From: Anthoceros angustus
Lineage: Eukaryota > Plantae > Anthocerotophyta
DNA: 64,000 nucleotides
Direction: 5' to 3'
Assembly: GCA_010909165.1 (NCBI GenBank)
Contig: MU008160.1
Coordinates: 806,001-870,000 of the forward strand
Both the position numbers and the translations under genes were made by a program. Every line of letters starts with the position of its first letter. The first letter of the stretch is position 1. This document shows positions 3,009 to 36,392 of this stretch, piece after piece. The notes below the pieces were generated by a model, which made no database searches, had not been told where the DNA came from, and saw nothing but the letters and a program-made list of their open reading frames with translations.

Positions 3009-3039
3009 TCCAAATGCTCTCTATTTTTCTCAAGACATA

Positions 3040-3787: not shown

Positions 3788-4194
3788 CTTTTGGCGTTGA
3801 TCTGAAGCGTCACAATTGTGTTGCTGACCCTTGGCTTGCTTGCGTCTCTTTGCATGAGATTGGTCCGTCAACTGACATGTCTGTTCATAAACCCAAGAAA
3901 TGTCGGTTAGAAACCCTAAGTAAAGAACTCAAACGATACTTTTGAAAGGTTGTGTCCCTTCTCACACTTACACCCTTTCACGTATCCAGGAAGTTGGATG
4001 AGGGAGCTAGCCTGTGAAGGATTGAATACACTTGTATCCATCCCCTCTCAGGTTGTCTCCCCCAACTAACCCCCTGGACACGCATCGTTAGTATCACATG
4101 AGCATCTTCTAGGAACAATTACATCGGAGCATAACTAACCTCGCTATTTTTCCTCTTGAACCATAGTTTTGAAAGGGACTTAGCTGGTTTACGC

Positions 4195-7100
4195 ATGTCC
4201 GATACCGAAAGTGCACATAGTGCATCTGACATCAGCCTAGGTGCAGTCTTAGATCCATTAGATCGTAGCTCTACCTCGTCGGAGGGGGAAGAGGACCTGC
4301 AGGCTGCTAATATATCCAATTTCTGGAATTTTCTGCCAATAGTACCTGTCACAAGTACACAAACCATGGCTACAGGTCCCTCTTTCACATCAGAATTGAA
4401 AGAGAAGGATAGGTTTAATGGGAAACTGTACCATGTGTGGAAGGTACGCATGAAAGCTCTCCTGATAGCTAGGGGAGTCTGGAGTGTTGTGGGTGGAGTT
4501 TTCCAGAGCCTAGCTCTCAAACCGGTACCCAAGCTGATATAGATAAGTGGACAGCTCACAATGAAGTTGCTGTTGCTGTCATTATCAATGGCTTGGATAC
4601 CCTTCTTGTTCCTGATGTGGACTACCTGAACAAGGGCATCGAGATCTGGAATCAGCTCGAGAAAACCTATCAGGTCACTAATATCATGACCAAATGTGTT
4701 GTGTGGCAAGAGTTTTATGCTCTTAGGATGAAAGACGGAGAAAATGTGGGCGGATTTACCAGTAAATTTCGTCACCTCCGTGCTCAGCTTGCTTCCTACA
4801 ACTACAAGATTGAGGAGGAACACGCTGTGGTTCAGCTGTTGAGCAGCTTGCCCGCCTCACTCCAACAGTTTGTCAATTCCTACAATGGTCCTTTGTGTAC
4901 CTCACAGGCTGCTGTTACTGCCGGTAATGCAAGCACCCTCACTGACGACATAGTGGCGGCGTTGCATCAGGAGGAGCAGAGCCGGTTGTTTTCTACAACA
5001 AACACAAAGACCAAGGCTGACGAGTGTTAGTGGCTAAGGTCAGACCCAACAAATCGAAGGGGAAACCCACCACTAACACAGGTCACGATACGTCCACAAA
5101 AAGGACTGGCAATTGCAATTGGTGTGGAGCTCCCGGCCATTGGGCATGGGATTGTCGCAAGAAAAAGGCCGGGGAGCCCCAACGCCAAAAACAACCGCCA
5201 AAGGTGGCGTGAAGGAGAAAGTTGACAATTCAAAAGATACTGTGAAGATTCTCACTGTCTGCCTGACCAGCACGTTGCATGATGCTGGAGAGTGGTATCT
5301 CGATTCCGGAGCTACCACTCACATATGCAACGACAAGAATTTGTTCTCCAAGTTGACCCTGAGTCACATGAAGGACAAAGTGCTGTTAGGGGACGAAAGG
5401 AGTGACACCAGCCTTCGAGTTGAGGGACATGGCAGATGTACCTTCTTTTTCAATGACGGCTCCAGAGCAAGATATCGAGGGAGTGCTATATGTGCCGGAT
5501 ATGGCGAAGAACCTCTTGTCGATGAGTAAGCTCATGCAGATGCGCATGTATGAGATGCGTATGGTTGATGATGCCTGCTGCTTCTATAGAAAATCTTCAC
5601 CTAACATCTGCGCATTTAGAGGTGTCCTCGATCATGACCTGTACAGGCTAGAGCTGAAGTGTTCTTCTGCGTCCACAAGCCATGCAGCGTACACGGTCAA
5701 CATGAATGCTAGTCAGCTTGCATCTTTGTGGCATGCTCGCCTAGGGCATGCTAACCGCAATAAACTGATTGACATGTCCAACCTCGGCTGTCATAGGGAG
5801 CCCTTACCTAGTTGTTTTAAAGAGTTGCCCGTATGTGAGGCATGTATTCTTGCAAAACAGAAGGAGCTTCCTTTCCCGAAAACTGCACATAGAGCCACAC
5901 GAGTTTTAGAGCTTGTACATGCAGATATTTCAGGAAAAATCCATACACCCTCTTTAGGAGGAGCCCTCTATTACCTGACTTTGACAGATGACTTTAGCCG
6001 GTACTCTTGGACCTTCCCCATGCACCTGAAAAGTGACACCGTTAGTTACTTTAAGGACTGGTTACCCACAGCACAACGTCAGTCCGGTTGTACGCTGAAA
6101 ATCCTTCGCAGCGATAATGGCACTGAATTTGTTAACCATGAGTTCGATGAGTACTTATCTGAGCAGGGTATCCAGCGGCAGCTAATTGTTCCTTATACCC
6201 AACAGCAGAATGGTGTAGCTGAGCGCAAAAACCAGACCTTGCTAGGGATGACTAGGAGCATGCGCTCTGGGAATCTGGGCAGGTCTACCTCAGGAATACG
6301 GGGCAGAGGCAGTGGTCACTGCCACGTACATCTTGAATCGAGTGCTGACCAGTTCTGTTAAAGGGAAGACACCATTTGAAGTATTCTGGCATAGAAAACC
6401 CAGTCTGCTTCACTTGCGTGTTTTCGGCTCCAAGGCTTTTGCATATATCCCTGCACCAAAGAGGAAGAAGTTAGAGAATCGAGCTCGTAGACTGATCTTT
6501 ATCGGCTACAGTGAAAATGTGAAGGCCTATAAGCTGTATGACCCTGATACGACAGACATTGTCCTTGCACGGAGTGTTACCTTCCTAGAGGCTATCAATC
6601 TTGTCACAACCGACCCCCAGCAGGCTTCATTTTCAGAGGGAGATTCTGGTGAGGAGGCACCGGATACTGTCACCTTCCCGGCTGATGACACACAACCCCC
6701 AGCAATTGTTCCTCCAGCGCCAGCAGCTCCCCATCCTCCAGTTGCCCCTGCAGCAGACCAGGGTGACATCCTTCATTACGATCCTCCCTCGGATCTTGAA
6801 GACCCCGCTTACGAGGACGCATCGACCGGATCCCTGATGGCCCGCCGATCTTGTTACGATGATGTTTCGATCGATCTGCCAGGAGCTCGCCTCGCTGCGC
6901 TTGTCAACACGTCATGTGCCACCTCCGATCAATGGCGTGAGCCGTTACACGCCTCGTGGATTTTCACACCTGCTGACATGGAGCCACTGTTGATATTCTT
7001 CCTGCAGAGGAACCTTCTTCCTACCAAGCAGCACTTGATGGCCCCGATTGCTCCAAATGGCAGGCAGCAGTGGAGGAGGAGTATCAGTCTCTTCTTAAAA

Positions 7101-8357
7101 ACAAGACTTGGACACTTGCTGACCTACCACTAGGGCGTAAAGCCATCTCGTGCAAATGGGTTTTCAAATTGAAGCTGAATGCCAAAGGGGAAATTGCCCG
7201 ATACAAAGCCAGGCTTGTGGCTAGGGGCTTTACCCAAGTGGAGGGTCTATCGTGGAAACTTTTTCACCTGTCCGTTCGCCTATTCGCTCCCGGCCCTCGC
7301 TGCAGAGCTCGATCTTGATCTCCAGCAAATGGACGTATGCACTGCATTCTTGTATGGGGATCTTGATGAGGACCTGTACATGTGCCAACCAGAGGGCTAT
7401 CAGGATCCAGAAACCCTAACAAAGTCCTAAAATTATTAAAGTGCATTTATGGACTTAAGCAGAGCGGGAGGGTATGGTATATTACCATGCATGTTTACCT
7501 CCTTAGCATCTCTTTTGTGCAGAGCACAGCAGATTCCAATGTATACAGGCTGAGCAGAGGAACCGATTTTGTCGTGCTTGCCCTGTATGTGGATGATGTT
7601 ATCCTCGCAACTAACGACGTTGTTAGAAAGGTAAAGCACATGCTCAGCACAAAGTTTGACATGAAAGACATTGGGGAGCTGAAATATTGCCTAGGAGTAA
7701 AGATTATTAGGGTCAGATCCGAAGGCCTACTCATCATATCGCTAAATATATAAATGATATTTTGAAATTTAAGTTGGATGAGGCTAGGCCCGCTACAACA
7801 CCCTACTCCACAAGGATGAAACTCACCGCCTTCATTGCCCACACCGAGGAAGAGTCCCGCTGAGCATGCGTACCTTATATGCTGCTGGGAGCCCTGATAT
7901 TTGCTAATCGACACGCCCGACATTCTGCATTCCGTTAGCACAAGATTCAGCCTCGGAAAACCCCGCGTAATGCATTGGTCACCGTTAAGAGAATCTTCGA
8001 TATCTCAAAGGCATCATTATGGGCTCACATGTAGGGAGCGGAAAACAAAAGCTTACCTTGACAGCCACCGAGGACCGGCATCCGAGTGATTCGAGGAAGA
8101 GCTTATCCACTTATTGTTTTTTGCTCGCCTCTGTTGCAGTCAATTGGTCGTGTAAGAAACAATCTTCTATAGCCCTGTCTTCCACAGAGGCGGAATACAA
8201 ATCACTGACAGATGCATCTAAAGAGGCAGAGTGGGAGAGGAGCTTCCTACATGACCTGGATCAAGCACAAGAAGGACCTACCTCAATATTGTGTGACAAC
8301 ATGTCAGCCCTGGCCCTAGTAGCAAATCCCAGATTCCACGCCCGCACTAAACACATT
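4195..8357 (+). pseudogene. gag-pol: Copia gag-pol polyprotein, copy 1 (frameshifted; RNase H cut after RTKHI)
   Basis: FNGKLYHVWKVRMKALL (gag N-term), CNWCGAPGHWAWDC (zinc knuckle), WYLDSGATTHIC (protease), LWHARLGH, LRSDNGTEF and QQNGVAERKN (integrase), KARLVARGF, QMDVCTAFLYG and LYVDD (RT), EAEY and CDN (RNase H). Confidence 0.95.
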
Positions 8358-9190
8358 CCCTACTAGAAAAGGCAGCCTATGTTACGTGTTATTGCAATTT
8401 CATGTAACACTTCCAGATTGCAACATGTTATTTAGGCTTGGTATTAAGATTGACACTATTCCTTCTCACACACCATCTTAACATGAACCTCGCTCTCTCA
8501 TCACCTCACCCTCCTAAGTACAACATCCCTCTGCTAGCATTGTTTATGATTTCAAACATATACAATGAAAACTTGCTTATGTTATAGTCCTTTGTTACAA
8601 TTTCATGTAACACTTTCCATGTGGTACACCCAAAAGTTAGGTGGCTTGGTGTTAAGTTTGTGATTTTCCCTCCACCTTCTCTCACCATCTTAACAACATG
8701 CAAGTGGTCTCTTGACCTTACACCTCGCCATTAAGAGCTTGTCATCAAGTTTGTTGGTTTGGTGTTAAGTTTGTGATTTTGTTTTCCACTTTCTCTTACC
8801 ATCTTAACAACATGCTCTTGGTCTCACCTTTCACCTCACACTCCTAGTTAATGCTGGATGATGACACCCATTTCTTTATTGTTTCCTCTTTGTGTTGCCA
8901 TATGATTGTGACAATGAGCTCCCTCTCCCACCGTATTTTATTCTTGCCTTCTTGCTTTTCCTACATAGCAATTACCAAGAACTCTATCTCTCCTCGTAGG
9001 TATCATTCTTTCCATCTTCCCTCTTCAATGCACCCTATGTCCACACCGGTTTTCTTTTCAAGCCCCATATACACAAACCCTTGTTATCGCTAATTATGTA
9101 TAGTAGGATTCTACATTATTTATATGTCCATTTATATATACGGTTGGCGCCGATGTATTCGTGATAATCCTACATACATGACATGAACGT
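8358..9190 (+). mobile_element. Left arm only of the CACTA-type element (duplicate of 35561-36392)
   Basis: ATT followed by CCCTACTAGAAAAGGCAGCCTATGTTAC and subterminal repeats; homology stops near 9190. Confidence 0.9.
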
Positions 9191-10968
9191 ATATATACCT
9201 TCCCTTGTTGTGAGTCAACATCAGCATAGATGCTCTCCCGCTGTTGTGAGGCACCACACCGAGCATAGATGTGCAGGCTGCAGTGTGTAAGACATTGAAA
9301 TGTGACGGAAGCAATGAGGGCCACATGTTTGAACACATGAGTGAGAGCAAGACACATGTAATGTGTTGAGAACAAAGTTGGATTTTTCCAACTTATCGTT
9401 AAAATTGGTAATGAACTCAAAACAGCAAACCCCTCATGCTCTAAGTTAAAGGGATTATGTGCAGACGCATCTGTGCATGCAATGAATTTACATTCTAGAA
9501 ATCTCATTGAGATTATCAAAGCTGAGTTTGTTTAAGATTGAATTACGCTACAATTCTATGGAGATTATCAAAGTTTCGATTTTGTTAAAGATCGTGTATA
9601 AAGTTCACCACAATTCATTGAGAGTGTTACAATTAAAACCCTACTAAGGAGTTTTAGTAATCTAGAGTCAAACACTACAGGAGTTTACGATGACACATGG
9701 TTTTCAAATGCTGATAATGAGCAAGAAATAGATATGGATAAATCTAACTCTAATGGAATGCAATATGAAAGGTAGTTACGGTGGTCATCAAGTCGAGAAG
9801 AGGCAATAAGCCTTCTTATATAATCAAAGAAGGACATGGACAAACTTCATGCCCTATAAGACTACTTGGGTGGAAAACTCAAGGGAGAGTGAGAAATTGA
9901 AAAGCTTGAAGAACGTGGAGGATTATCTGTTTGAAAGATTATTAGCCAAAGTGGAAAAGGTAAAATCAAAGTGTTAAAAGTTGGTGCTAAATTACCTACC
10001 AAAGACATGCCATTTCGAATTGCATAGCGCTGTGGGCACGTTGTCCTTTCGAGAAATGCGCTCGGCTCTCATCAACAAAATTCGCTTGTGTTGGTAGGCA
10101 AGGAGGATCGATGTGAAGCTCCCGTGGAGCAGAGCGCTCAGCTCATCCAAAAAATGCAAATTTTGGTAGGCATGTTGGAGGATCGAGATGTGAAGCTTGC
10201 CATCGAATGGATGTAAGATACTTTTATGCAGCCTGAGCCCTGTGATTCCAGGGACACTACCACAATGCATGAGGTAAACTAACGAAGGTAAAGCGTGGTT
10301 TCTTGTCATAATTGCACATAGCAATCCCAGCAAATTACACTTAGCGACATTGAACAGCCCATCCCAGCACTGATCCAGGCATGGGGTGCTTAATCCCCGG
10401 AGGTCTTAGAAAGAGTAGATATTAGCAACACCCAACTGCTGGAGCACTAGCACAAAATGACGGGTTTTGCTACGCCCGCTTGCTCTTCACTGACGCCTGC
10501 TTGCCCTTCACTTTGTTAGCCTCTGCTTGCTTTACTGGTCAGGACCCAAACGCGTCTTGCGGGCGAATCACCGCTGGGATGGGGACAGCCGTTAAGCGTC
10601 TGATGTTTCAGAGGAATGTTCCCACGCTCTGTCTCCACTGCTCCAAAGGCCAGCCGCCGGGGCCTGATTGGTCTCAGCTGGCACGAGCTAGAACTCCATT
10701 GGCCCACCGAGAGTGAGCCAGAGTTCCAACTCTGTACACAGGTGGCCCACCAGTCTGAGGGATCCTGGAGGAATGGGTGCAAAGACTGATCCTGCCGATC
10801 TTTATCCCGTTGCAGACGCTCCGACATAAAAGATCACAGCCAAATTGCCTAATGTTGTCGTTTCAATGTTCGCTTGTCGAATGCGGAGAGGGTCAGTGCT
10901 CTTTGTCATACTTCCTGTTGAATGAGTCACCATACATGCCAGTTCACCTTCGGCAGACTGGCAATTCT

Positions 10969-13471
10969 TCACGGTCGACCCTTAACTGCAACAACCAGCT
11001 GCAAAATCGATGCACACGGTACCCATCCTCACAACAATGTCTCTCTGTTCAAGCCTTGACATGATCTCCGTGGAACTGTGGCAGTCACTGCACATGCGTA
11101 GATTCTTCGTTACCACCAGAGGTGTCCACTGGAGTGTTCAAGAGACCAAACGCCAGAGCTAGCTTCTCAGCATGCCCACAAAGCACATCTTCCTTTTCCT
11201 TCTCACACAGTGGCTTCAACACCAACTTGTGTGAGGTACATGGCCTCCTTCCTGCTTCAGACGTGCATTCTTCTCTACCTTGAGCGCAACATCCTCTCTT
11301 TCTCTCCCACCAAAATGTATGTACCTTATTCACCTCAATGCTCGCCACTGCAGGTTTCTTGTTAGCTCCTGCTGTTCTCTGTGTTTCAATCCTGTCTACA
11401 TCGTCCACCTACCTGCATCTGCTAGGCATTGGCCATGAGCACATATGCAGGCCTCTGAGGTCCAGCCTAACAGCTTTCAAAACACCGCCGCCTCTATATC
11501 CCTGACTTTTGCAGGCATTCAACAAAGACGTCAACCCACAACATTACTTTGGCCTCATGATAATAGCATTCTCTGCCTCATCTAAATGGCCTGCACGCCC
11601 AAGAAGATCAATCATGCAAGTAATGCTCAATAGTAGGTTTGATGCCATGCTGTTCAGCCATGGAATCAAAGTGCTGCGACCCTCATGGACCAGTCCCTCA
11701 TGACTGCATGCTAAAAGGCAAGTAAAAGTAGCCATCAGGCTGAATACCGGCAACTAACATCTCCTCAAACAAGCTAGTGCCTTGTGACCTTCATCACAAG
11801 CACCATACCCAGATATCAGGGCATTCCATGTCACCACATCCTTTGTGGCCAAGCTGTCAAAACCTGGCGTGCATCTTCCAGTTCACCACATTTTGCATAC
11901 ATGTCCACCAGGCAGTTGCCCAACACTACGTTATCCAGCAGTCCTCTTCAACAATCAGAGTGCAGCTGCCTGCCCTTCTGTAAGGCACCAGTGCTTGCAC
12001 AGGCCTTCAGAAGGCAAGCAAAAGTAACATGGTTAGCCAAATCAGGCCTCCTGCTCCATTTGTCCATACAGAACAAGCGCCTCTTGGCGAGTCCTTGCTG
12101 CATACCCAGCAATCAGCATTCCATGTCACCACATCCTTTGTGGCCAGCTGTCAAAAACCTGGCGTGCATCTCCAGTTCACCACATTTTGCATACATGTCC
12201 ACCAGGCAGTTGCCCACCAGTTATCCAGCAGTCCTCTTCACAATCTGTGAGTGCAGCTGCCTGCCCTTCTGTAAGGCACCAGTGCTTGCACAGGCCTTCA
12301 GAAGGCAAGCAAAAGTAACATGGTTAGCCACAACAGGCCCCTTGCTCCATTTGTCCATACAGAACAAGCGCCTCTTGGCTGCCCTTGCTGTGCATACCCA
12401 GCAATCAGGGCATTCCATGTCACCACATCCTTTGTGGCCATGCTGTCAAAACCTGGCGTGCATCTTCAGTTCGCCACATTTTGCATACATGTCCACCAGG
12501 CAGTTGCCAACAAACAAGAGGAATGCCACTGTGCAACACATCACAGTGCACTTTTCTGCCAGATTCCAAGTCGCGGCAAATGCACAAGCTTGAAGGGCAG
12601 CTACAAAGACGTGAGCATCCGCCTTCACTCCTGACCTACGCATCTCATGGTACAGTTGTATGGCCTCTTAGGTTTCCCATGTTTAGCATGTGAGATTATG
12701 GAAAACCACATGAAGGCATCTGGTTTGTCCACCCTGGTGAGCACATCCATGGCCTCCTCTAGCCTACCTCCAGATGCATACATGCGCAAGATATGATTCC
12801 CCAAGTATGCATTCGAATCGTACCCAAGTTTGACAGCCAGATCATGAACTCGTCGCCCCATAACCAGATCCTTCTTAGCTGCACACAGTTTTAGCACAGT
12901 GTAAAACAGAGACTGAGAAATGGCAGATTCTGTCTGCGCCAGAGATTCCAGGGCTTCAACGGCCTCAGAAAGCTTCCCCTGCTGACATAACACAGTCACG
13001 GTTCCAGCCGTGACGACGCCCATTTCCGATCCTGCACGCCTCCCAGGTTCAGGCTTATCCGGAGCTCGACTTGGAAGAGGCACCATGACCCATCTGCATA
13101 TCCAAAGAAACGAGCTGCTCATCAACCCAAGCTGGACATGCTGTTTAACCACAGGACCTCGCCGGACCCTTACGCCGGAAGTCAGGCGAACGGGAGCTCT
13201 TATCTCGTCTGTTGTCCCACCACATGGTAGGGTCCAGAAAAATTGTTGCCACAAGTGCTCCTGCTCCTGGCAACGACCATCGCTGGAAAACCCGTCACCC
13301 ACACATTTTCTCGGAAGTGGAAGTGCTGGGCCCTTACACTGCTGCACCTGGAGGCTTGGTTGTTTGCCAGGGTTGACTCCTCTGAGATGAGGGTGAGCGG
13401 GAGCTCCTCGTAGAATCCCTGTACACACACCAATTTGTTGGGTCCACAACGGGTCCGCCACACAGTGCCAT
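10969..13471 (-). CDS. PPR-A: PLS-class PPR protein with E-DYW:KP domain ending GRP; frameshifts may be sequencing errors
   Basis: N-terminal extension (putative transit peptide), then P/L/S motifs (DVVTWNALIAGY, VTFACLLKACASTGAL, GNCLVDMYAKCG), LLGRAGHLDEAE, NKKPAVASIEV, HAEKLALAFG, CSDCH and ...KGRP stop (tca at 10969-10971). Start codon inferred from paralog alignment. Confidence 0.9.
11822..12500 (-). repeat. Near-identical S-P-L triplet repeats of about 295 bp within PPR-A (equivalents in B and D)
   Basis: cattccatgtcaccacatcctttgtggcc...ttttgcatacatgtccaccaggcagttgcc recurs at about 11822, 12117 and 12412. Confidence 0.9.
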
Positions 13472-13938
13472 CCTTCAGGGACTGCTGTCGGAGATGAGGC
13501 TAACAACAAACATGGCAGATGCCCAGGTACTGCATGGCCACACCACCTGAAGAAAAGTGCATGCGGTTTACTGCATTTTGGCCAAACCTGTCTCGAGATT
13601 TGGTCAGCCCAGCCCTGTGGAGGCTGGGTGACATCGAGGAACAGTCGTCCAAAGCCAAAAGAATCCAGCCAAGTTGTCGAAGGCTAGTAGGGAAGATGTC
13701 ACTTGGATGCAGTCCCCAGGTCGAAAACCAGTCCGTGGGACTGAGAGATGATGTACATATGTGCCGGTCAAAATGACACCCTGTAATAAATGCAGGACGT
13801 GCATACCATGTATGGAAGGAAGGTGTTTGGAGAGCTCATGCCTTCTGGCTGAGAGTGTGAGTGGCCAGAGAATGAGCGCGGATTCAGCCATGCCCATCAG
13901 TGGTTGTCCGCCTCATCTTCCGACAGCGGTGTCTGAAC

Positions 13939-16310
13939 ATGGCCACAGTTTGGCAACGGATTGTCGTGGACCCAACAAATTGGTGACTGTGCAGGATTCT
14001 ACAGAGAGCTCCAGCTCTGGACCTGGAAACAACCAACCTCCAGGTGCTGCAGTGTAAGGAACCCAGCACCCAAGTTTGAGAAAATGTGTGGGGAAAGATT
14101 TTCCAGGGATGGTCGCCAGGAGCAGGAGCATCTTGTGGAAACATTTTTTCTGACCCTAGGTGGTGGGACAACAGACGAGATAAGAAGAGCACCCTGACTT
14201 CCGGCGTAAGAGGTCTGCCGGGAGGTCCTCTGGTTAAACGTATATGGCCAGCTTGGTGATGAGCAGTCCTGATACGCAGATGGGTCATGGTGCTCCTCCA
14301 AGTCGAGCTGTCCGGATAAGCGGAGCTCAGGCCAGCTCATGTCTGGCAGACAGACTGTTCTATTTCTTCGTCTCTGCTGTTGATGCAAAACTGTGTGAAA
14401 GAAGGATTTGCTGTGGGGACGAGTTCATGATCTCATTGTCAAACTTGGGTGCGAGTCGATGCATTCTTGGGAACCATCTTCTGCGCATGTATGCATGTGA
14501 GGTAGGCTACAGGAGGCCATGGATGTGTTCACCAGGGTGGCACCAGATGCCTTCATGTGGTTCCATCTGCATATGCTAAACATGGGAAACCAATGGGCCA
14601 TACAACTTTACCATCAGATGCGTAGGTCAGGGTGAAGGCGGATGCTCACGTGTTTGCAGCTGCCTTCGCTTGTGCATTGGCTGCCGACTTGAATCTGGCA
14701 GAAGTGCACTGTGATGTGCACAGTGGCATTCTCAACTTGTTTGTTGGCACCTGCCTGGTGGACATGTATGCAAATGTGGTGAACTGAAAGATGCACGCCA
14801 GGTTTTGACAGCATGGCCATAAAGGATGTGGTGACATGGACGGCCCTGCTTGATGGGTATGCAGCAAGGGCTGGCCAAGAGGCGCTTTTCTGTATGGGCA
14901 AAATGGAGCAGAGAGGCTGATTTTGGCCAACATATTACTGCTTGCCTTTTGAAGGCCTGTGCAAGCACTGGTGCCTTACAGAGGGCAGGCAGCTGATGCA
15001 GATGTGAAAAGAGGACTGCTCAATCACGGTTGGCCTGCACATGTATGCTGTGAACTGAAGATGCACTGGTTTTTGAGAGCTGCACATGTGGTGACATGGA
15101 CGTGTGGCTGAAAAATGCACTGAAGATGCACGCCAGGTTTTGACAGCATGGCCACAAAGGATGTGGTGACATGGACTGCCCTGATTGCTGGGTATGCAAC
15201 AGGCTCGAAGAGGCACTTCTTGTATGGACAAATGGAGCAGGAGGGCCTGTGGCTGACCATGTACTTTGCTCCCTTCTGAAGGCCTGTGCAAGCACTGGTG
15301 CCTTACAGAAGGGCAGCTGCACTCACAGATTGTGGAAAGAGGACTGCTGATAACATGTGGTTGGCACTGCCTGGTGGACATGTATGCAAAATGTGGTGTG
15401 GAATGCACGCCAGGTTTTGACAGCTTGGCCACAAAAGATGTGGTGACATGGAATGCCCTGATATCTGGGTATGGTACTTGGATGATGGTCACAGGCACTA
15501 GCTTGTTTTGAGGAGATGTTAGTTGCCGGTATTCAGCCTGATGCTACTTTACTTGCCTTTAGCATGCAGTCATGAGGGACTGGTACGAGGGTCGCAAGCA
15601 CTTTGATTCCATGGCTGAACAGCATGGCATCAACCTAATGTTGAGCATTACATTGCATGATTGATCTTCTTGGCGTGGGCCATTTAGATGAGGCAGAGAT
15701 GCTATTATCATGTGAGGCCAAAGTATGTTGGGGTTGATGTCTTTGCTGAATGCCTGCAAAAGTCACGGGATATAGAGAGGGCAAGGTGTTTTGAAAGCCT
15801 TTTGTTCTGCTGGACCTCCAGGCGTCAGCGTATGTGCTCATGGCCAATGCCTATGCAGATGCAGGTAGGTGGACCGATGTAGACAGGATTGAAACACAGA
15901 GAATGCGAGCAGGAGCTAACAAACAGCCTGCAGTGGCAAGCATTGAGGTGAATAAGCAGGTACATACATTCCTGGTGGGAGAAAGAAGAGAGGATATTGC
16001 GCTTAAGGTAGACAGCACGAATGTTCAACTGAAGCAGGAAGGAGGCCACCCCACACAAAGTTGGTGTTGAAGCCACTGTCGAGAAGGAAAAGGAAGATGC
16101 TTGTGGGCATGCTGAGAAGCTAGCTCTGGCGTTTGGTCTGTTGAACACCTGAGTGGACACCTCTGGTGGTAACAAAGAATCTACGCATGTGCAGTGACTG
16201 CCACAGTTCCACGGAGATCATGTCAAGGCTTGAAAAGAGAGACATTGTTGTAAGGATGGTATCGTGTGCATCGATTTGCAGCTGGTTGCAGTTGCAAGGG
16301 TCGACCGTGA
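13939..16310 (+). CDS. PPR-B: PLS-class PPR-DYW:KP-type protein ending GRP; heavily frameshifted as assembled
   Basis: Homologous to PPR-A from leader to stop; NKQPAVASIEV, HAEKLALAFG, CSDCH, tgc agt tgc aag ggt cga ccg tga. Confidence 0.85.
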
Positions 16311-17312
16311 GAAGGAAGAAGAATAGCCATGGCCGAGTGAATTTTGCTTTCTTCTGAGTTGAATGTCGGTTAACTCCATCCCTGTGCTAACTGAGACAGC
16401 GAATAGGTCTTCCACATAAAACCTCCTGCGACAGGGAAGATGATCTGATTATGGAGCAGGATCGTGCTTGTGTACGTTCACCGTGACGCAAAGATAGCTT
16501 GAGCCCATTGTGCAATGCAGCCGTGATCATATGCAGGATAATTGAAGAAAGGGATGCTCATGACATCAATGGCAATGTCAGAGTTTTGCCCAGTCTGCCT
16601 GGCCTGAGCGCCCGATTTCCATGAGGAAACTTGTTTGTGCGCATGTTGTAGCCTTCTGCTGGTGTTGAGCTGCAGTTCCAGCCGAGCTGACCAGGAAGAC
16701 CGGTTTGTTGAATCCATGGACCCAAAACGTAACGTTAACCATCGAATTGAAATTTGTGAACGATACGTATCGTACACACATGATACAAGGGTGAATGATC
16801 AAATGAACGTTAACGAAAGAATCTGTACTGCCAGTGGCATGAGTTGGGCCTGTCCCGTCGATTGACATGAACCATCGAAGCATCTGGCTTTTTGAGTGAT
16901 GCGTCTAGGAGAAGCCCAGATTGCTTAGTTGCTTCAGTCGGTAGCTATTGCTGAGAAAGCTCCAGAGATTGTTCCGCAAGACAAGGCTTCAGTATGTGGA
17001 TTTACGGAGAAAGAACAAGAGAATTGTTCCTGGTGCCAAGCAAATCAGGTTCCTCATGAGTCCTGATGCTATGTTGACACTGGGGTTATTGATGCCAATA
17101 TCTCCACTTGCCGCAATGAAGAGAGGTCGCCGCACGTGCTGCAACCTGAGTTCTACCACCACAAGACTTAGCATGGCTGTTGCAGTGCATTTGGAAGGAA
17201 GGTACACACTGAAGATCTGTCCACCCAGAGAATTAGGTGAATCCTGCCACCAGTTCCACCTCCTGAAGAAGAATAAGAAGAAATTTGTTGTGTGCATCCT
17301 CCTGAGTGTCAC

Positions 17313-19315
17313 ATGGCCACATTGTGGCATGGAGCCCGTGGACCCAGCAAAAGGAGTGTACAGGATTCTAGAGACCTCCGCTCACCCACCTGGGAGTCAA
17401 CCGCTGAGACAATCAAGCCCAGGTGCGGCGTGATGTAAGGAACCCAGCACTTGTTTTGAGAAAAGCGTGGGTAGGATTTTCCATGGTCGTCGAAAGGAGG
17501 ATAATTTTTGGCTACAAATGTTGCTGGACCATGGCATGTGCTGGGACAACAGTCGATAGGAAGAGCTTCGGCTGACTTCCGGCGTAAGGGCTCTGGTCGC
17601 GGTCCTCTGGTTATGCTACCTGGATAAGCAGCTGTTCTTTGATATGCAGATATATGGTGAGTCTCCTTCGAACTCGAGCTCATGAGCCTGACCTGGCAGT
17701 CGCAGGATCAAATTGGCATCGTATGGCCAACTGTGATCACGTTATGCCAGCAGAAGCTTACTGAGGCAGCCTGGAATCTCTGGCTCAGAGACTGTCCTAT
17801 TTGTCTCTGTTTTATACTGTGATAAACTGTGTACAGCTAAGAAGGATTTGTTCTGGACGAGTTCATGAGCTCACCACCAAACTTGGCTATGAGTCGAATA
17901 CATACAGGGAACCATCTGTTGCATGTATGCAAGTGGAGGTAGGCTACAGGAGGCTATGTTCACCAGGGTACGCAAACCAGATGCCTTCATGTGGTCTTCC
18001 ATAATCTCCGCATGTTAAACATGGGAAACCTAATGAGCCAGATCTGCACCATGAGATGCGTAGGTCAGGTGTGAAAGCGGATGCTCACGTTTTACAGCCT
18101 TCAAGCTTGTGCAGGCCAGACCTGAATCTGGCAGAGAAATGTGATGTGTGTACAGTGGCATTTCGCTCCTTGTTTGTTGGCAGCCTGGTACATGCAAAAT
18201 GTATAACTGGAAGCTGCACGTCAGGTTTGACAAAGCCACAAAAATGTCATGATGCAATGCCCTCACAGCTGGGTATGCAAATAGTGGCGACCTGAAAGGT
18301 GCACGAGGGTCTTGACATCTCACAAAGGATGTGGTAACATGGACAGCCCTGATTGCTGGGTATGTAGCATGGCCTTGGCCAAGAGGCGCTTGTTCTGTAC
18401 AGAGAAATGGAAAAGGAGGGCATCATTGTGGCTGACCTGAAGATTCTGCTGCCTTCTGAAGGCCTGTGGAATGCTGGGCCCTACAGAAGGGCAGGCAGCT
18501 GCACTCGCAGATTGTGGAAAGAGGACTGCTAGATAACCCATGGTTGGTACCTGCCTGGTAGACATGTATGCAAAATAGAACTGGCAGATGCACGCACATT
18601 TTTAACAGCTTATTAAAGGATGTTGTGTCATGGACACACTGATATCTGTTGGGTATGGTAATTTGTGATGAGGTCACAACGAGCTGCTTAGGATGCTGGT
18701 TACGGTATTCAGCCTGACGGTTACATTTACTTGTTTTGTTGCTTGCAAATGAGGGACTGCATGAAGGTAAGCACTTTGATTCCATGTTTGCAGCACAGCA
18801 TCCAACCTACTGTTGAGCATACAATCTGATTGATCTTCTTGGTCAGGCCATTTAGACAGAAATGCTTTTATGATCATAATGAGTCTGCTGATGCCTACCA
18901 GCACTTTTACAACATGTCACCTATGCAGATGCATAGGTGGACCATGTAGAGAGTTGAAGCACAGAGAATATCAGGATTGAAGAAACCCAGAAGCAGGCAT
19001 TGAGGAATAGCAGGTGCATACACATGTGGAGAAAGGACAGATGACATTCAAAGGTAGAGAGCACAAACGCTGAAGGAGGAAAGGCTACATGCCCAGACAA
19101 AGTTGGTGTTGACTGCTGGACAAAAGCATGAGCATGCTGAGAAGCTAGCCATGGCTGGTCTCCTGAACACCCAGGGACACCTTGATGGTAACAAGAATCC
19201 TTTGTGCAGTGACTGCCACAGTTCCACGGAGATTATGTCAAGTTGAAAGGAGAAGTTGTGAAGGGATGTATCTGTACATCATTTGCATGTTGTTGCAGTT
19301 GTAGGTCGCCCGTGA
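17313..19315 (+). CDS. PPR-C: shorter PPR-DYW:KP paralog (about one triplet fewer); the most degraded, may be a pseudogene
   Basis: Same leader (atggccaca..gtggacccagc), WTALIAGY, KKP, HAEKLA, CSDCH and a GRP-like end ggtcgcccgtga. Confidence 0.75.
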
Positions 19316-19641
19316 GATGAAAAGTGACAGTGCTAAAGTGAGCATTACTTCTCAAGAGGTGAGCATGCCTGCTTAATTCCATCCTGTGTAAACTGTGATG
19401 AGACAACGATTCTCACAGTTGTAGGAAATCTGGGTCTTTATCTCTTCCCTGTATGTACACAAGTTCCGTGAGGAAAGGCAGCCCAGGACTGATGAAGTGA
19501 GAATGCAGCAGGATGGTTGATATCCAATATTCGTCCAAGAAATGGATGGAGATGCTTCATGGCGGCATGTCAAGAAGCCTCACCCAACTATGATTGCCAC
19601 CCTGGCAAAATATGGACACCTGCTTGGGTAATGAAGTGAAT

Positions 19642-19750
19642 CCAGAGTGTACCCAACAACCATGGTGGCAAATATTGGTGGCCTGCCTGTAACGGAAGGA
19701 ACCAGAGAGAGGTACCCAACAACCATGGTGGCAAATATTCAGGCCTGCTT
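19642..19750 (+). repeat. Two-copy direct repeat, period about 63 bp
   Basis: tacccaacaaccatggtggcaaatatt at 19650 and 19713. Confidence 0.85.
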
Positions 19751-20846
19751 GGGAAACTAAATTCACTGGGAGTACTTGAGAACGACACCCGGGCACTGGC
19801 GGTCCGCTAGGTGTATTAACAGATTGGGGCATTTTAGTAACGACTGCCTGTTGGTCAGTTAACGACGGTCAATTATATTTTACATTCTGAATTATAATAA
19901 GAATGGCCTAAATAAGTATATCTGAATAATAAATAATTTTAATCTTACTGGTTATCCATTAAAGCGTAAGCTTTCGAAGAGGTTGTAATTATACATATTT
20001 ATGTTAAACCTTCGAGGCCCAGTCATAAAGATGGGTCATGCTTGGCTGTACATGAACACCGAGAATGTTTAGATAAGGTCCGGTGTGCCAGCCTAAGCTA
20101 CATATGTACGGAAATTAGCACAAAAGGCTTGAACCGCTGAGGCGGCCAGGTTGGCTTTCTCCTCGATTTTGTGAATCCCAACCTCAGAACCTGGCTGAGC
20201 CTGCGAGGACTCGGCTTGCATGCGTGCCAGACTGATTCCAACGTGTATGCAATGACTGGAGCATACCCATGAATAGAAGAAGAAGAGAATTTATTGAAGT
20301 CACAAGGAGGATTTCCGTCATGGGACTTGGTACTTAACAACCATGGTGTGCCTAAGCTACTTGCTGCACCAAGGGCATCCACCCTTTAGGCACCCCAGCG
20401 ATCCAAGCTCAGGATGCTTAATCACGGCGTTTTATAAATGTGTCCATTTGCCCAGCCATTTGGACAAGGGTAAGCAAGTGCCCTAGATTGTCACCGCGAT
20501 TCACGCGCCGATCATACATGCTGGAGGAACAAATGCAGGGCTTAGCAAAATTGCCGGACAGGTCCTATACCCGACATGCCAGAGGCCATTGAGCATCCTG
20601 TCCCTCGTTCACAGTTCCAAATGTCCGGATATCACATCATGGCTTGCCTTTCGATCAGCTCCGAGCTGCCTTTCCTCATGATACTGTTACACAGAAGATT
20701 CATTAAACCAGATTTTCCCGTCACAGAAAAGGTGACAATCCGTTTCAGCGATGCCGCTGTCTCAAACAGGATGAAAGTGCATACTCACGTCTTGAAAGAC
20801 AGCAACATTCTCTCCGTCCAAACTTGAGCACTGGCACAACGTCTTC

Positions 20847-23351
20847 TCACGGACGGCCTTTACAACTGCAACAACCCAGCTGCGAATCGATGCACACGGT
20901 ACCCATCCCTTACAACAATGTCTCTGTTCAAGCCTTGACATGATCTCCGTGGAACTGTGGCAGTCACTGCACATGCGTAGATTCTTCGTTACCACCAGAG
21001 GTGTCCCACCGGAGTGTTCAAGAGACCAAACGCCAGAGCTAGCTTCTCAGCATGCCCACAAAGCATCTTCCTTTTCCTTCTCAGACAGTGGCTTCAACAC
21101 CAACTTTGTGTGAGGCATGTGGCCCCTTCCTGCTTCAGTGCATTCGTGCTCTCTACCTTAGCGCAATATCCTCTCTTCTCCCACCAGAAATATGTACCTG
21201 CTTCACCTCAATGGTCGCCACTGCAGGTTTCTTGTTAGCTCCTGCTACCTTCTCTGTGTTTCAATCCTGTCTACATCGGTCCACCTACCTGCATCTGCAT
21301 AGGCATTGGCCATGAGCACATAGGCGGTGCCTTGAGGGTCCAGCCTAACAATGCTTTCAAAACACCACATGCCCTCTCTATATCCCCGTGACTTTTGCAG
21401 GCATTCAACAAAGACGTCAAGCCCACAACATTACCCTCACATGATATAGCATCTGCCTCATCTAAATGGCCTGCACGCCCAAGAAGATCAATCATGCAAT
21501 TGTAATGCTCAGTAGGTTTGATGCCATGCTGTTCAGCCATGGAATCAAAGTGCTTGACCCTCATGACCAGTCCTCATGACTGCATGCTACAAAAGGCAAG
21601 TAAAAGTAGCATCATCAGGCTGAACACCGGCAACTAACATCTCCTCAAAACAAGCTAGTGCCTTGTGACCTTCATCACAAGCACCATACCCAGATATCAG
21701 GGCGTCCATGTCACCACATCTGGCCATGTCAAAAACCTGGCGTGCATCTTCCAGTTCACCACATTTTGCATACATGTCCACCAGGCAGTTGCCCAACACT
21801 ACGTTATCCAGCAGTCCTCTCACAATCTGTGAGTGCAGCTGCCTGCCCTTCTGTAAGGCACCAGTGCTTGCACAGGCCTTCAGAAGGCAAGCAAAAGTAA
21901 CATCAGCCAAAATCAGGCCCTCCTGCTCCATTTGTCCATACAGAACAAGCGCCTCTCCGAGTCCTTGCTGTGCATACCCAGCAATCAGCATTCCATGTCA
22001 CCACATCCTTTTGGCCAAGCTGTCAAAAACCTGGCGTGCATCTTCCAGTTCACCACATTTTGCATACATGTCCACCAGGCAGTGCCACCACACGTCATCC
22101 AGCAGTCCTCTTTCAACAATCTGTGAGTGCAGCTGCCTGCCCTTCTGTAAGGCACCAGTGCTTGCACAGGCCTTCAGAAGGCAAGCAAAAGTGGTCAGCC
22201 AAAATCAGGCCCTCCTGCTCCATTTGTCTACACAGAACAAGCGCCTCTGGCCCAAACCCTTGCTGTGCATACCCAAAATCAGGGCATTCCATGTCACCAC
22301 ATCCTTTGTGGCTGTGTCAAAAACCTGGCGTGCATCTTTCAGTTCGCCACATTTTGCATACATGTCCACCAGGCAGTTGCCAACAAACAAGTTATTAGGA
22401 ATGCCACTGCAACACATCACAGTGCACTTTTCTGCCAGATTCCAAGTCGGCGGCAAATGCATGCTTGAAGGGCAGCTACAAAGACGTGAGCATCCGCCTT
22501 CACTCCTGACCTACGCATCTCATGGTACAGTTGTATGGCCTCCTTAGGTTTCCCATGCTTAGCATGCAGAGATTATGGAAAACCACATGAAGGCATCTGG
22601 TTGCCCACCCTGGTGAACACATCCATGGCCTCCTGCAGCCTCCACATGCATACATGCGCAAGATATGGTTCCCCAAGTATGCATTCGACTCGTACCCAAG
22701 TTTGACAGTGAGATCATGAACTCGTCGCCCCACAACCAATCCTTCTTAGCTGCACACAGTTTTAGCACAGTGTAAAACAGAGACTGAGAAAGCAGAGTCT
22801 GTCTGCGCCAGAGATTCCAGGGCTCCAACGGCCTCAGAAAGCTTCCCTGCTGACATAACACGGTTCCAGCCGTTACGACGCCCATTTCCAACCCTGCACG
22901 TCTGCCAGGCTCACGCTTATCCGGAGAGCTCGACTTGGAAGGAGAGGCACCATAACCCATCTGCATATTCAAAGAAACCAGCTGTTCATCCACCCAAGCT
23001 GGCTTGAACAAGTTGTTTAAGCAGAGGACCTCGCCGCCTGACCCCTTACAGCGGAAGTCAGGCCAACGCGAGCTCTTCTTACCTCGCCTGCTGTCCCACC
23101 ATATGGTAGGGTCCAGAAAATTGTTGCCACAAGTGCTCCTGCTGGTGACGACCATCGCTCGACAATCCTTCCCCACCGAGACATTTTCTCACAAGTGGAT
23201 GGGTTCCTTACACTGCTGAACCTGCAGCCGGAGGCGGCTTGTTTGCCGGTTGACTCCCTAAGGTGAGGTGAGCGGGAGCTCGTCCTAGCATCCTTGTACA
23301 CTGACCAGTTTGTTGGGTCCACAACGAATCTGGTTGCCATACTGTGGCCAT
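20847..23351 (-). CDS. PPR-D: PLS-class PPR-DYW:KP protein ending GRP; frameshifts may be sequencing errors
   Basis: ORF-track fragments LIAGYAQQGLGEAL...VQPDDATFTCLL, HYNCMIDLLGRAGHLDEA and KNLRMCSDCHSSTEIMSRL; NKKPAVATIEV; CSCKGRP stop. Confidence 0.9.
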
Positions 23352-26558: not shown

Positions 26559-29500
26559 ACCTTGTTTTTGATTCTGAGCATACCACTTGTTGCCTATAAA
26601 GGCATCAAATCCATAATGCATTTTCCACTCTAGATTATCTAATCTTCACATATGCACTTAGGAGATTTGTATTTCGGCGAATTGGATCATGCTCAATTTC
26701 ATATTTATATGATGCATAATTTGTGCATCCAATCCTTATCAATTCACCATGGATTCCACCAATCGTAGACAAGGATATTGGAGAAAATTCAAGACGCAAA
26801 ACATGAGAAACAATGTAAGGACCACCCATTAAACCAAAAGAAATTGGGTTCACGTGTTGAAGAAATAGAAGAAAACACGAATATTTGAAGCGGCCGAATA
26901 TAATGGGCCGCTTTAAAACCCGGGACCAATTTTAGATTCATTGTACAGTCCCAAAACCCATGATTCTTAATGTTCCTTGCCATGACGGAGTCTTGTTATC
27001 GCCTCGCTGCAATGGTCCGCTTTGGACAAAATTTTGCCTCTAGGTATGGTGCAGGTGGGCGCCGCATGCCGCCGCCTAAAAGAAACTCAACTTAACTAAT
27101 ATAAAAACTATAATTGATCTCGAACTCGCGATTCTATTAGCCGAGTTTTTACCACTTTACCAACTTTAGGAGACAACAAAATTTTATGATATAAATATAT
27201 ATCAATGAAGGTGCCAATATGCTAGCACCCTATGCTCTTATGCTCCTCCATAGGGCGCCTACGGCCCCTTAAATAGGTTTTCTATGAGCCGGTGCTGCTC
27301 CGCATTAACACTAGGGCTTACAACCACTTGTCCCGCACCCATGCACATTATGACTTACATATATTTTCGCTTGCGCAAGAGAATGAGAAAACACACCACC
27401 TTTCACACTTCCGATCACGACGCATTTTTGGTCGCTCACAAAGATGGTGTCCAACATACAAAAACGATTCAATTGCTATGACCTCAGAGAAAGATAGTCG
27501 CGCTACACGGAGCTCGAGAATAGGGAAGAAACTTGGCCGTGTCATGTCTCTTCTCCTCCGATTCAAGTGAAATTTGAGATCATGAATATTAGGGCATGGG
27601 TAATTTCAAACGCGGTTTAGAAAACCTTTGAAATTTAAAATAATTTCCATGATTTTGAGTTCAAGTGTACAAATTATTAGAATAAGGGAATTTAAACCAA
27701 ACCAATCATCTATCACTTTTACAACACAAACTATGCTCTCATTTCGATACATATTACCTATTCCTACACAACATGAAAAGTTAAAAGAAGACTTGAACCA
27801 AGACCTCTTCCAACTTTCAAAGCTTACCACTCCATTAACTTTCCCACACATAAATATTGGAAGCAAAGTATATGTTGAATGAGGGCGCATGCCCTTCTCA
27901 TTCTTCTTCTTCTTCATCATGCCCTTATGCTCCCCATGCTCCTTGTTTTTGATAGCCCGAGAAGCCATCACGGTTCGTGGTTTCTTAGCCACTAGCCTAG
28001 GGTGTCTAACCGATGTTGAGCAACCGAGAAGCCATTACGGCTCGTAGTTTCGCGAAGGAGTGTTTGTTGATCCAAGATTGCCAAAGGTTATGAATCTTGG
28101 CGGCATGCCGCCCAATGCACGTAGCCTTTGAGCATGATTGGTGCGATGCGCCTAGGTGTGTCACTTACGGTGTTTAGGGTCTTCACCCGCTATTGTACAC
28201 AATGACATCGACCGTTCCGGATTGGATGTATAGCACGCATATAGAAATAGCCGATGCATTCCCTTCGCCGCGCAGATGGTCGCCCATGTTCATCATCGTT
28301 GTTTAACGAATGGCATGCACTAACGACATGGGCATCATTTCCATTGAAAACAATGGTCTACCTATAGGTCAAACCTTCGCTACCATTGTAAGCCGCTAAA
28401 GATATAAAATTTCACGACACCCTAATTGTGTGCCTTCTTGCAGGTATGCTCAAATACACATTTCAATGCCCATCGAAAACCCCTGCTTCATGATATATTC
28501 ACGCCAAAAGCCGCTTGATGTATATTCAGCCGCTTCAAATATTATGCCGTTAGAAGTTTCAAAACAGGTTTGTAATTCCATTGGATCAATTTTGATTAAA
28601 TCAACTTATCAAGCAAATCTAATCAAAAGTGCTAGACAACGCTTGCTTACATCTTTTAGTCTAGTGCAAGTTGAGTACATCGAATTAGCTCTTCAACATA
28701 TTCCTAATCCAAGTGCTGGCCCTATATAGCTCCTAATTTTAACACAAATCAGCATAGCATCAATTCCATCAAATCAAATATAAAACAAATTCAAGTTTTT
28801 CCTGAAGACAAATTTGCTTTACTAATAAGTGAAATTTGTGATCTTATGAGGGTGAGAGGGGAGGGCGAGGTGGGAAAGCCTTGGGTTTTGCTCTATCCTG
28901 CTACTACCGGGTATGTCTCGTATGGGTCCGACCAGAGTGGTGGCAAGGCTTGGCAGGTTACGAAGTGTACGCGGGAAGTACGATGCAAAGGGATGTAGTG
29001 GGACTGAGACCCAAGTTGAGGTGTGAGGGAGTGGATCTAGGAGAGGACGTGGCTCTAATGATGCGGAGGATTGTGGTGCATGCCACTGACGTGGGAGAGA
29101 GAGGGCTTAGGTGAGAAACTCCTCAAAAGGGTGAGCTCCTGAAACTCCACTACCGAGTACGGATCTTGGGGAAAAGGCTGCACGAGAGGTGTGGGAAGTA
29201 GGTTGGGGATGGCCTGAATTTGGGCAACGTGGCACCTTGGCTGTCATAACAATATTGTAGATTGTAAATGTGTCTCGGTGGATTAATGGAAGATGATGAA
29301 ATGTTTGTTGAGTCAGGAGTGAGTTGCTCTAGGCGAGAAACTCCCCAAAAGGGTGAGCTCCCAAAACTCCACTACTGAGTATAGATATGGAGGAAAAGGT
29401 TGCACGGGAAGGGGCACGGTGAGTGCTGAGTAGAGATTAGGGGTAATGTGTGTGCGAAAGTTGTCGGGCACTATGTGTGCAGAGAGTTATACGACATGGT

Positions 29501-30128
29501 ACGGCTTCACTAACCTCCTCTGGTTTGTGTCACCTTATGATGTAACTGCAGGTGTGAGCCACACCTGGAATGGTACATCGGTAATAACTCCAAAGACGCC
29601 CCTCACCTTGTCGACGACGTCCCTAGCGGCCCCCCTAAGGACGTCCTAGGAAACAACGTCGTGGGGTGTGTGATGGGAGGAGAGAGAGTAGTTAGAGAGG
29701 AGTCACCCCCTTCCCCTCCCTTAGGTTAGGAGCTGAGTAGATGTTGTGTGTGTGTGTATGTGCTTGAGATGGTTTGTTGATATTTTGCAGAGAATGGTCC
29801 ATAGTAGGCACAAAGTACGATCCCCTAGGAACGAATACTACAACAGAACATGGGGATCAATGTGACCCCACTATTGGGATCCAATTGGTGACTTCACATG
29901 GGAGAGCCCATCCACCAGAGGATGAGACCCCGAGAGTCGTGGCCAAAAAGAGCAACTAAGCTCCCCACCTGAAATCTCTTTTTGCACTAGCAAAATGGCC
30001 CTACCAGCCTAAATACCTAAATATTTAGTTAATTTCATTAATTATTTTTCTACATTAGTAACTACATGACTCATCGAGAAACAAATCTAATTATTATTAA
30101 GCGTAAGCAAGAAATGGCTCGGTAGATC

Positions 30129-30294
30129 TGTTGGAAATAAAGCCAACATTAAGTATAAGGGTTTCTTTAGGTTAAACATACGTGAACCATTTTTAGGGTT
30201 TAGTATATAAACAATACACACATACAATTTTGTAACCATTATTTCATTATTTGAAATCAAGCTTTGTCGAGCCAAACCGCCTCTCCAAATTACA
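30129..30294 (+). repeat. Copia 5' LTR, copy 2; PBS TGGTATCGAGC at 30295-30305
   Basis: Matches 2829-2996 apart from indels at the 3' end. Confidence 0.95.
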
Positions 30295-30334
30295 TGGTAT
30301 CGAGCCAAATGCTCTCTATTTTTCTCAAGACATA

Positions 30335-31080
30335 ATGCCTCGGGTAGATCCTGCGATCGACGTCAACAGAGGAGGCTACAAAACTCAAGTCGAGTCCTTG
30401 CTGCTAGCGTTTTGGATTTGTACGAGGCCAACTACCCCGACGCATGCCAGGTTGCTAGAAACTCGTGCAAGTTCCAGAGGCTGATTAGGCTGCGATTGAG
30501 AACCTCGTGGAGTAGATTCTCTCACCGGCCTCGGTGCATTGCTAGGAACCACCGATCCTCGCCACAACCATCGGGTCAATCAGCCGAAGGAGTCAACACT
30601 TTCAGCCTCTTCTCCTGACACCCCTGAATTTGGTCCTATTGCTGATTGGGAGTTGCGAGCCTTTGGAGAAGTCTGCAATCACCCAAATTACAAGAGGACG
30701 CTTAGGTGGCTGAAGGGAGAAACATCTGCAGAAGACGACGCAATTGCTGCAGAAAAATCTACTTCATACAAGAAACGAGTAGAGAAATTGGCTGCAGAAA
30801 AGCAAATTTCAGTTGAGGTTCCTGTTGGGACTTCCATTGAAAAACTCCTGTTCAATCAGCACATCTTGAGAGACGGTGTTGCTCGCCTGCAAGTCTGCAT
30901 TGACACACAAATTTCCAGAATTGATAGAAATATCTCGGAGATTGCTGGAATGATGCGTGCGATGGATCTTGGTCAAGGATTCTCCACAGAGTTCTTGCCA
31001 GCGAGCGGAGACTCCATCCTGTGACCTCGCTCACCGGCGGGAGCGCTGGAGATGCGAAATGGCGATGGATCGCATGACTT
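30335..31080 (+). CDS. Extra ORF upstream of gag, copy 2 (frameshifted)
   Basis: ORF-track peptides 30412-30618 and 30539-31024 match the copy-1 peptides. Confidence 0.6.
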
Positions 31081-31477
31081 TTGGCGTTGATCCAAGCGCC
31101 AATTGTGTTGTCAATTCTTGGCTTGCTTTGGTGCCTTTGCATGAGATTGGTCCGTCAACTGACATGTCTGTTCATAAACCCAAGAAATGTCGGTTAGAAA
31201 CCCTAAGTAAAGAACTCAAACGATACTTTTGAAAGGTTGTGTCCCTTCTCACACTTACACCCTTTCACGTATCCAGGAAGTTGGATGAGGGAGCTAGCCT
31301 GTGAAGGATTGAATACACTTGTATCCATCCCCTCTCAGGTTGTCTCCCCCAACTAACCCCCGACACGCATCGTTAGTATCATGAGCATCTTCTAGGGACA
31401 ATTACATCGGAGCATAACTAACCTCGCTATTTTTCCTCTTGAACCATAGTTTTGAAAGGGACTTAGCTGGTTTACGC

Positions 31478-36389: not shown

Positions 36390-36392
<3 letters not shown>

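Follow-up and report, generated by a model that had tools for sequence, protein, structure and literature searches.

Replacements at code position 5 set two of four clustered, putative DYW:KP-type PPR gene copies of Anthoceros angustus apart from the others

Introduction

Hornwort PPR proteins of the GRP type form one of two DYW:KP subgroups and are candidate U-to-C editors (PMC9478123). They have been put forward as candidate U-to-C factors (Gerke 2020, Gutmann 2020, as cited in PMC9478123) and the designer proteins KP2 and KP3 were built on them (PMC9478123). Here we describe a cluster of four copies, A to D, of one gene apparently belonging to this type. It lies at 10.9–23.4 kb of a 64,000 nt stretch of the hornwort Anthoceros angustus (assembly GCA_010909165.1, contig MU008160.1, positions 806,001–870,000, forward strand), called hereafter the window. 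Like the hornwort GRP-type proteins, the copies combine a PLS array with P2-L2-S2-E1-E2, an LVLKPL KP box in place of the PG box, an HxE and CxDCH zinc site, and a C-terminal GRP. They differ from them in that none of the four has an open frame in the assembly, C is without E1 and KP box, and all four carry an N-terminal PDF-like motif, of which no mention was met in those parts of the literature that were consulted.

Clusters of restorer-of-fertility-like (Rf-like) PPR genes are said to be under diversifying selection at their RNA-contacting residues, reportedly the finding of Fujii et al. 2011 in PNAS. The present cluster resembles them in its recent duplicates, its conserved repeat scaffold and the concentration of replacements at specificity residues. 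Unlike the Rf-like genes, which are P-class genes of flowering plants with no deaminase, the excess found here concerns position 5 only and rests on 22 sites.

A second parallel is synthetic. In designer PLS-DYW and PLS-DYW:KP editors, near-identical consensus triplets are assembled, and the target is set by changes at residues 5 and last alone (PMC9478123). The A. angustus copies also contain near-identical PLS triplets. Whereas those editors are engineered, triplets b and c are near-identical here by nature, forming an internal 294-nt tandem repeat, and any parallel in function is putative.

Results

Replacements are concentrated at position 5

The longest open reading frame (ORF) in the cluster is 294 amino acids. 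The copies were therefore read through their breaks with a purpose-written frameshift-tolerant protein-to-DNA aligner, guided by the Logan contig L001 (SRR28420626, 70–72% DNA identity) extended by the C-terminal part of the intact protein P0034. Motif calls were checked by plain regular expressions on three-frame translations. A BLASTN comparison of the region with itself gave identities of 89% for A-D, 84.5% for A-B, 83.4% for B-D and 72–77% for C against the others.

A preliminary description of this DNA had reported that the copies differ at the residues of the PPR code, position 5 and the last residue of each motif, with N at position 5 of the first S motif and of the P motifs in A and D, and T or S in B and C. 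Every one of these residue calls was reproduced on the raw sequence, by alignment and by regular expression (Table 1); the S motif in question is S1a, which follows P1a-L1a. The T residues of B and C are spelled by four codons, ACC, ACG, ACT and ACA, and they are thus neither one event nor error, but old, real differences. Three further differences were found beyond those first listed. The last residue of L1b is N in A (12220–12222), D in D (22094–22096) and H in B; position 5 of S1c is T in C; position 5 of P1a is S in C versus F in A, B and D. Frameshifted, and hence uncallable, are the codons for position 5 of S1b in D (near 22084, which reads GGCAC-TGC, so that the original could be AAC or ACC), of S1c in B (near 15365), and of P2 in C and D. 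The same alternation of N/T and N/D, on near-identical PLS units, was found in the independent contig L001.

The preliminary description suggested that the substitutions are focused on the code positions. This was examined per site, on codons clean in at least three copies and with the other PPR positions as background, and pairwise, on codons that were in frame in both copies and on the same three DNA-alignment columns. Position 5 of S1b and the last position of S2, affected by frame errors of the D reference, were excluded from the stricter test. Per site, 82 of 354 background positions were variable. Positions 5 and last taken together were variable at 11 of 22 sites (p=0.007), position 5 alone at 8 of 12 (p=0.002), and position 5 of P and S motifs at 6 of 7 (p=0.001). 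No enrichment was detected among the clean codons of the last position (3 of 10, p=0.42). In this small sample, the proposed focus stood for position 5 and was not seen at the last position.

Pairwise, code sites exceeded the background in the D-B comparison (7/16 versus 31/296, p=0.001) and in the A-B comparison (6/16 versus 32/306, p=0.006). For C versus A or D, 33–38% of code sites differed versus 20–21% of the others (p=0.11–0.17), and for A-D the code contrast was not above background (2/21 versus 25/369, p=0.44). Amino acids at non-code PPR positions differed by 7% between A and D, and by 10% between A and B and between D and B, in agreement with the early impression that neighbouring codons are close. 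In this small and noisy sample, the focus of replacements appears to be real and to lie at position 5, the residue that discriminates between purines and pyrimidines; it sets B and C apart from A and D, and not A from D.

Predicted specificities

In the PPR code, a motif with N at position 5 and D, N or S as its last residue recognises pyrimidines, and one with T at position 5 recognises purines (PMC3420917). The bases predicted on this rule for P and S motifs are given in Table 2. They agree with the original proposal that A and D would read pyrimidines at places where B and C would read purines, the separation being due to the N to T/S switches at position 5.

Table 2. Bases predicted for the P and S motifs of the four copies, 5' to 3'.
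Motif	A	D	B	C
S0	U	U	U	n/a
P1a	?	?	?	n/a
S1a	U	U	G	purine
SS (C only)				U
P1b	C/U	U	A	absent
S1b	U	?	?	absent
P1c	C/U	U	G	G
S1c	U	U	?	G
P2	U	U (position-5 codon frameshifted)	U	n/a

Selection, and the contrast between A and D

The ratio of non-synonymous to synonymous substitution rates (dN/dS) was computed on clean codons. In the PPR tract it was 1.04 for A-D (32 non-synonymous, 9 synonymous), 0.51 for A-B, 0.56 for D-B and 0.39–0.52 for pairs with C. In the E1-E2-DYW part the corresponding values were 0.49, 0.28, 0.21 and 0.49–0.57. The deaminase end was clearly constrained after B split from A and D, and the differences between A and D look unconstrained.

The N/N of A and the N/D of D had also been taken as code divergence. 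This part of the proposal was not borne out, as the contrast lies within the background. It may be asked whether these differences are real at all: they could be substitution-type sequencing errors or neutral polymorphism, A and D having the same specificity. That the A-D code sites vary no more than other sites and that the PPR tract shows no constraint fits this explanation, as does the finding that all three changes are single A/G transitions. All three nevertheless go in one direction, the homologous last positions having AAC in A where D has GAC or GAT, and both N and D are found at the last position in the intact relative L001. We regard the explanation as a serious one, although somewhat short of probable. 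The contrast between N in A and D in D as the last residue, seen in P1b, L1b and P1c, is indistinguishable from neutral change or error. CpG decay as the cause of a D-to-N change at the last position was ruled out, the context GCT|GAC not being a CpG.

Motif architecture and exchange of units

The four paralogs had been described as sharing one scaffold. A and D indeed have the same layout, a PDF-like motif followed by L0-S0-(P1-L1-S1)x3 (triplets a, b and c)-P2-L2-S2-E1-E2-DYW:KP. B follows it except for a degenerate, shortened S1b and the remnant of an SS motif. C consists of P1a-L1a-S1a, an SS motif, one further PLS triplet and P2-L2-S2; it has one PLS triplet fewer, and most of E1 and the KP box are gone. 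The arrays contain 14 reading motifs in A and D, about 15 in B and 12 in C. A single shared scaffold is therefore true only for A and D. By gain or loss of motifs the register of the upstream motifs is shifted.

Triplets b and c of A and of D form internal tandem repeats (Table 1). Units A_b, A_c, D_b and D_c are about equally alike (6–10% substitution distance), without orthology signal, versus an A-D difference of only 3.2% in unit a. Such a pattern suggests either that units have been exchanged or that the repeated part is noisier than the rest. Most of the differences might then have come about not by point substitutions targeted to the code but by the exchange or conversion of entire PLS units, between repeats and between paralogs, combined with gain and loss of motifs. 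Other observations go in the same direction: among clean codons divergence is highest in unit b, SS motifs are present in B and C and not in A or D, C has a triplet fewer, and the last residue is the same in the two units of each copy, N in A and D in D. However, the excess at position 5 stays in aligned clean codons, where it is 4-fold versus B, while the rest of the units differs by 9–21% in amino acids; moreover, noise peaks in the repeated units and may blur orthology. We hold such an origin of the differences to be doubtful.

Frame breaks in the cluster and in the window

The aligner detected 34 frameshifts in A (29–32 of them deletions), about 40 in B, 41–43 in C, where the alignment is shorter, and 25 in D. 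Deletions of 1–2 nt accounted for 134 frameshifts and insertions for 6. A control simulation with equal insertions and deletions gave equal numbers back, so the aligner has no deletion bias. In-frame stops were almost never true nonsense substitutions; those in A and C trace to deletions, and in D none was present across 644 matched codons. The terminal branches cover a range of about 7-fold (0.015 substitutions per site for A, 0.022 for D, 0.033 for B and 0.112 for C). The density of breaks is nearly constant across copies and shows no relation to branch length; indels and substitutions are equally frequent on the branches of A and D.

Some deletions are identical in several copies. A T5 to T4 deletion in CAGGTTTTTGAC was found in two S motifs of A, three of B and none of D, and a GATGATG to GATG deletion recurs in A, B and C. 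Near-coincident frameshifts between copies were not above chance overall, and sisters share no more of them than non-sisters; there is thus no evidence for inherited breaks. Deletions were enriched in homopolymers of at least 3 nt (16 of 50 versus 7.5 expected, p=0.005) and were not enriched at CG (3 of 50 versus 2.6 expected) or CHG (6 of 50 versus 11.3 expected). The idea that the errors sit at methylated cytosines is thus not supported here.

A similar excess of gaps is found elsewhere in the window. The cluster is flanked by two direct Ty1/copia copies that are 90.5% identical and show 282 gap openings versus 349 mismatches. In a gypsy long terminal repeat (LTR) pair of 83% identity there are 105 gap openings versus 104 mismatches. 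The PLS unit is 287–296 nt long in the window versus 306 nt in the intact relative L001, from which it follows that about 4% of bases are missing here. The longest ORF of the whole window is 319 amino acids. A majority consensus of the four copies, tried as a frame repair, did not restore the frame, since too many deletions coincide or misalign.

Sequences of the same genes were looked for in three ways, and none was found: a word search with a clean 134-amino-acid piece gave a best match of 65% identity, no relative exceeded 55% identity in a search of the whole library, and a word search with an alignment of P0034 and window pieces as query gave a best match of 60.6% to the D read-through. 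No polished copy having been found, we infer rather than observe that noise is at the origin of the breaks. On the observations above, most frame breaks are probably long-read assembly errors. The genes themselves may be intact.

Family assignment and features of the cluster

The four copies are arranged as A<- ->B ->C <-D. Frameshift-aware alignment to L001, P0034 and P0165, together with Pfam, showed alternating P1-L1-S1 triplets ending in P2-L2-S2, and ORF pieces of the cluster matched the Pfam families PPR, PPR_1, PPR_2, E_motif and DYW_deaminase. In A, B and D the array is linked to the deaminase by E1 and E2; in C most of E1 is missing. The zinc-site motifs HAEKLA (HxE) and CSDCH (CxDCH) were found in all four copies. 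At the C-terminus, GRP followed by a stop replaces DYW in four copies out of four. The closest intact protein found, P0165 (950 amino acids, ending in GGRP and of the same layout), is 60.6% identical to the D read-through over 660 residues. Judged by these sequence features, the copies are PLS-class PPR genes with E1/E2 and DYW:KP of the GRP subgroup, that is, hornwort-type candidate U-to-C editors. All four start with the PDF-like motif WWDNRRDK..PDFRRK followed by PAWVDEQ, which is also present at residues 75–115 of P0165.

A and B lie head to head, with about 450 nt between their first aligned codons (13453–13903). Their N-terminal regions form an inverted repeat of 77% identity (13053–13507 versus 13903–14321), and they may share a bidirectional promoter. 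In the Logan contig L003 (SRR33208241, positions 839–5902), two intact PPR-E-DYW genes stand tail to tail, 470 nt apart, like the convergent C and D. Accurate assemblies thus also contain clusters of this family. Over positions 1–2315, the contig L001 reads cleanly in three frames, and the two frameshifts between them each fall at the boundary of a PLS unit; these may be an assembly mis-join between near-identical repeats, or a real break.

Table 1. Positions in the window of the four gene copies, their code motifs and other features.
Feature	Copy	Position	Strand	Details
Gene copy	A	10969–13453	-	Frameshift-aware alignments; Pfam PPR and DYW_deaminase matches on ORF pieces; motif regular expressions
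Gene copy	B	13903–16310	+	Alignments; motif regular expressions; Pfam E_motif and DYW_deaminase matches
Gene copy, most diverged	C	17296–19315	+	Frameshift-aware alignments; motif regular expressions
Gene copy, sister of A, least broken	D	20847–23314	-	Frameshift-aware alignments; motif regular expressions
S1a position 5, VGNCL	A	12497–12511	-	N = AAC
S1a position 5, VGNCL	D	22370–22384	-	N = AAC
S1a position 5, VGTCL	B	14743–14757	+	T = ACC at 14749
S1a position 5, VGSL	C	18176–18187	+	S = AGC at 18182; next codon missing
P1b N/N	A	VTWNAL 12406–12423; VANH 12320–12331	-	Last N 12323–12325
P1b N/D	D	VTWNAL 22280–22297; LADH 22191–22202	-	Last D 22194–22196
P1b T/N	B	VTWTAL 14831–14848; ILAN 14920–14931	+	T = ACG; last N = AAC 14929–14931
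P1b	C			Absent
P1c N/N	A	N 12118–12120; LANH 12029–12040	-	N = AAT; last N 12032–12034
P1c N/D	D	N 21990–21992	-	Last D = GAT 21902–21904
P1c T/D	B	VTWTAL 15166–15183; VADH 15249–15260	+	T = ACT; last D = GAC 15255–15257
P1c T/D	C	VTWTAL 18334–18351; VADL 18428–18439	+	T = ACA; last D 18434–18436
Tandem repeat, PLS triplets b and c	A	11804–12512	-	TRF: period 294 nt, 2.4 copies, 92% matches, 5% indels
Tandem repeat, PLS triplets b and c	D	21685–22385	-	TRF: period 294 nt, 2.4 copies, 88% matches, 6% indels
SS remnant, after the degenerate S1b	B	~15020–15160		
SS motif	C	~18244–18328		
PDF-like motif	A	13169–13222	-	
PDF-like motif	D	23045–23101	-	
PDF-like motif	B	14193–14210	+	
PDF-like motif	C	~17500–17600	+	
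KP box LVLKPL	A	11208–11225		
KP box LVLKPL	B	16061–16078		
KP box LVLKPL	D	21086–21103		
KP box	C			Lost
GRP and stop	A	10969–10980		
CSCKGRP	B	16287–16307		
GRP and stop	C	19304–19315		
CSCKGRP	D	20850–20870		
Ty1/copia direct copies		1–9197; 27386–36407		gag-pre-integrase, rve and SH3_retrovirus matches
Gypsy LTR pair		45199–46937; 53702–55445		

Discussion

With moderate confidence we favour, from sequence evidence, the following explanation: the locus would be a cluster of four duplicated GRP-type DYW:KP genes that diverged at position 5, most of the breaks being noise. To judge from the family, the array would bind single-stranded organelle RNA, one base per motif, by means of residues 5 and last, and the DYW:KP domain would convert a U that lies a few nucleotides downstream of the RNA so bound. 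A and D would be recent duplicates with the same 14-motif array, and B and C older copies. Replacements after duplication would have concentrated at position 5 of P and S motifs, from N to T or S, so that in three or four motifs of the array a purine would be predicted instead of a pyrimidine. The SS motif in B and C, and the PLS triplet missing from C, would have shifted the register as well. The 25–43 frame breaks per copy would be mainly small deletions of a noisy long-read assembly, and the genes may be intact in the organism. From the position-5 switches and the register shift together, B and C are predicted to bind other sites than A and D, and should share no site with them.

Several points weigh against this explanation. 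Only 22 code sites could be scored, in noisy sequence. The A-D ratio of 1.04 in the PPR tract is compatible also with relaxed selection. Word and library searches returned no polished or transcript copy of the four genes. C may be truly dead, given its larger lesions, the missing E1 and the lost KP box, and silencing would be consistent with the reported under-representation of GRP-type genes in transcriptomes (PMC9478123).

Three of these points, namely the A-D ratio, the lesions of C and the transcriptome record, are also what could be expected if the copies were four real pseudogenes in a silenced, retrotransposon-flanked cluster, their code differences being relics from before their death, or drift, with no present function. 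The lack of any open frame and the position between two copia copies can be added. Such an origin is unlikely, however: the number of frameshifts is not proportional to branch length, copies that are not sisters have deletions in common, and the same excess of indels is seen across the window. A 22:1 bias towards deletions, with about one indel per substitution on the A and D branches, is far from the mutation spectra of plants. True nonsense substitutions are almost absent, whereas simulated random substitution at 4% gave 1–3 stops.

The favoured reading, duplicated editor genes diverging at position 5, involves a known family, the GRP-type DYW:KP genes, and a known, textbook mode of divergence of PPR specificity, by positions 5 and last. 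The finding is in that sense ordinary, the locus adding one to the PPR clusters already known, and it is only partly secure, because the sequence is full of small deletions resembling sequencing errors. Since no copy has an open frame in the assembly, retargeting is at most a putative function of the present-day genes. With about 4% of bases missing from the stretch, calls that depend on a single codon require accurate resequencing first.

A bolder version of the same reading would make the four copies intact, young GRP-type U-to-C editors with diverging targets and serving different U-to-C sites, the N-to-T changes at position 5, on PLS triplets that are internally duplicated and by nature near-identical, and the SS insertion having shifted the predicted site from U-rich to purine-containing. 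This we consider improbable on present evidence. If true, such young, diverging editors would be the designer-PPR chassis as found in nature. Should the copies be intact, four closely related DYW:KP editors of natural origin would be at hand, with predicted targets that diverge at a few known positions. They would lend themselves well to tests of the PPR code in U-to-C editing, a process so far poorly characterised.

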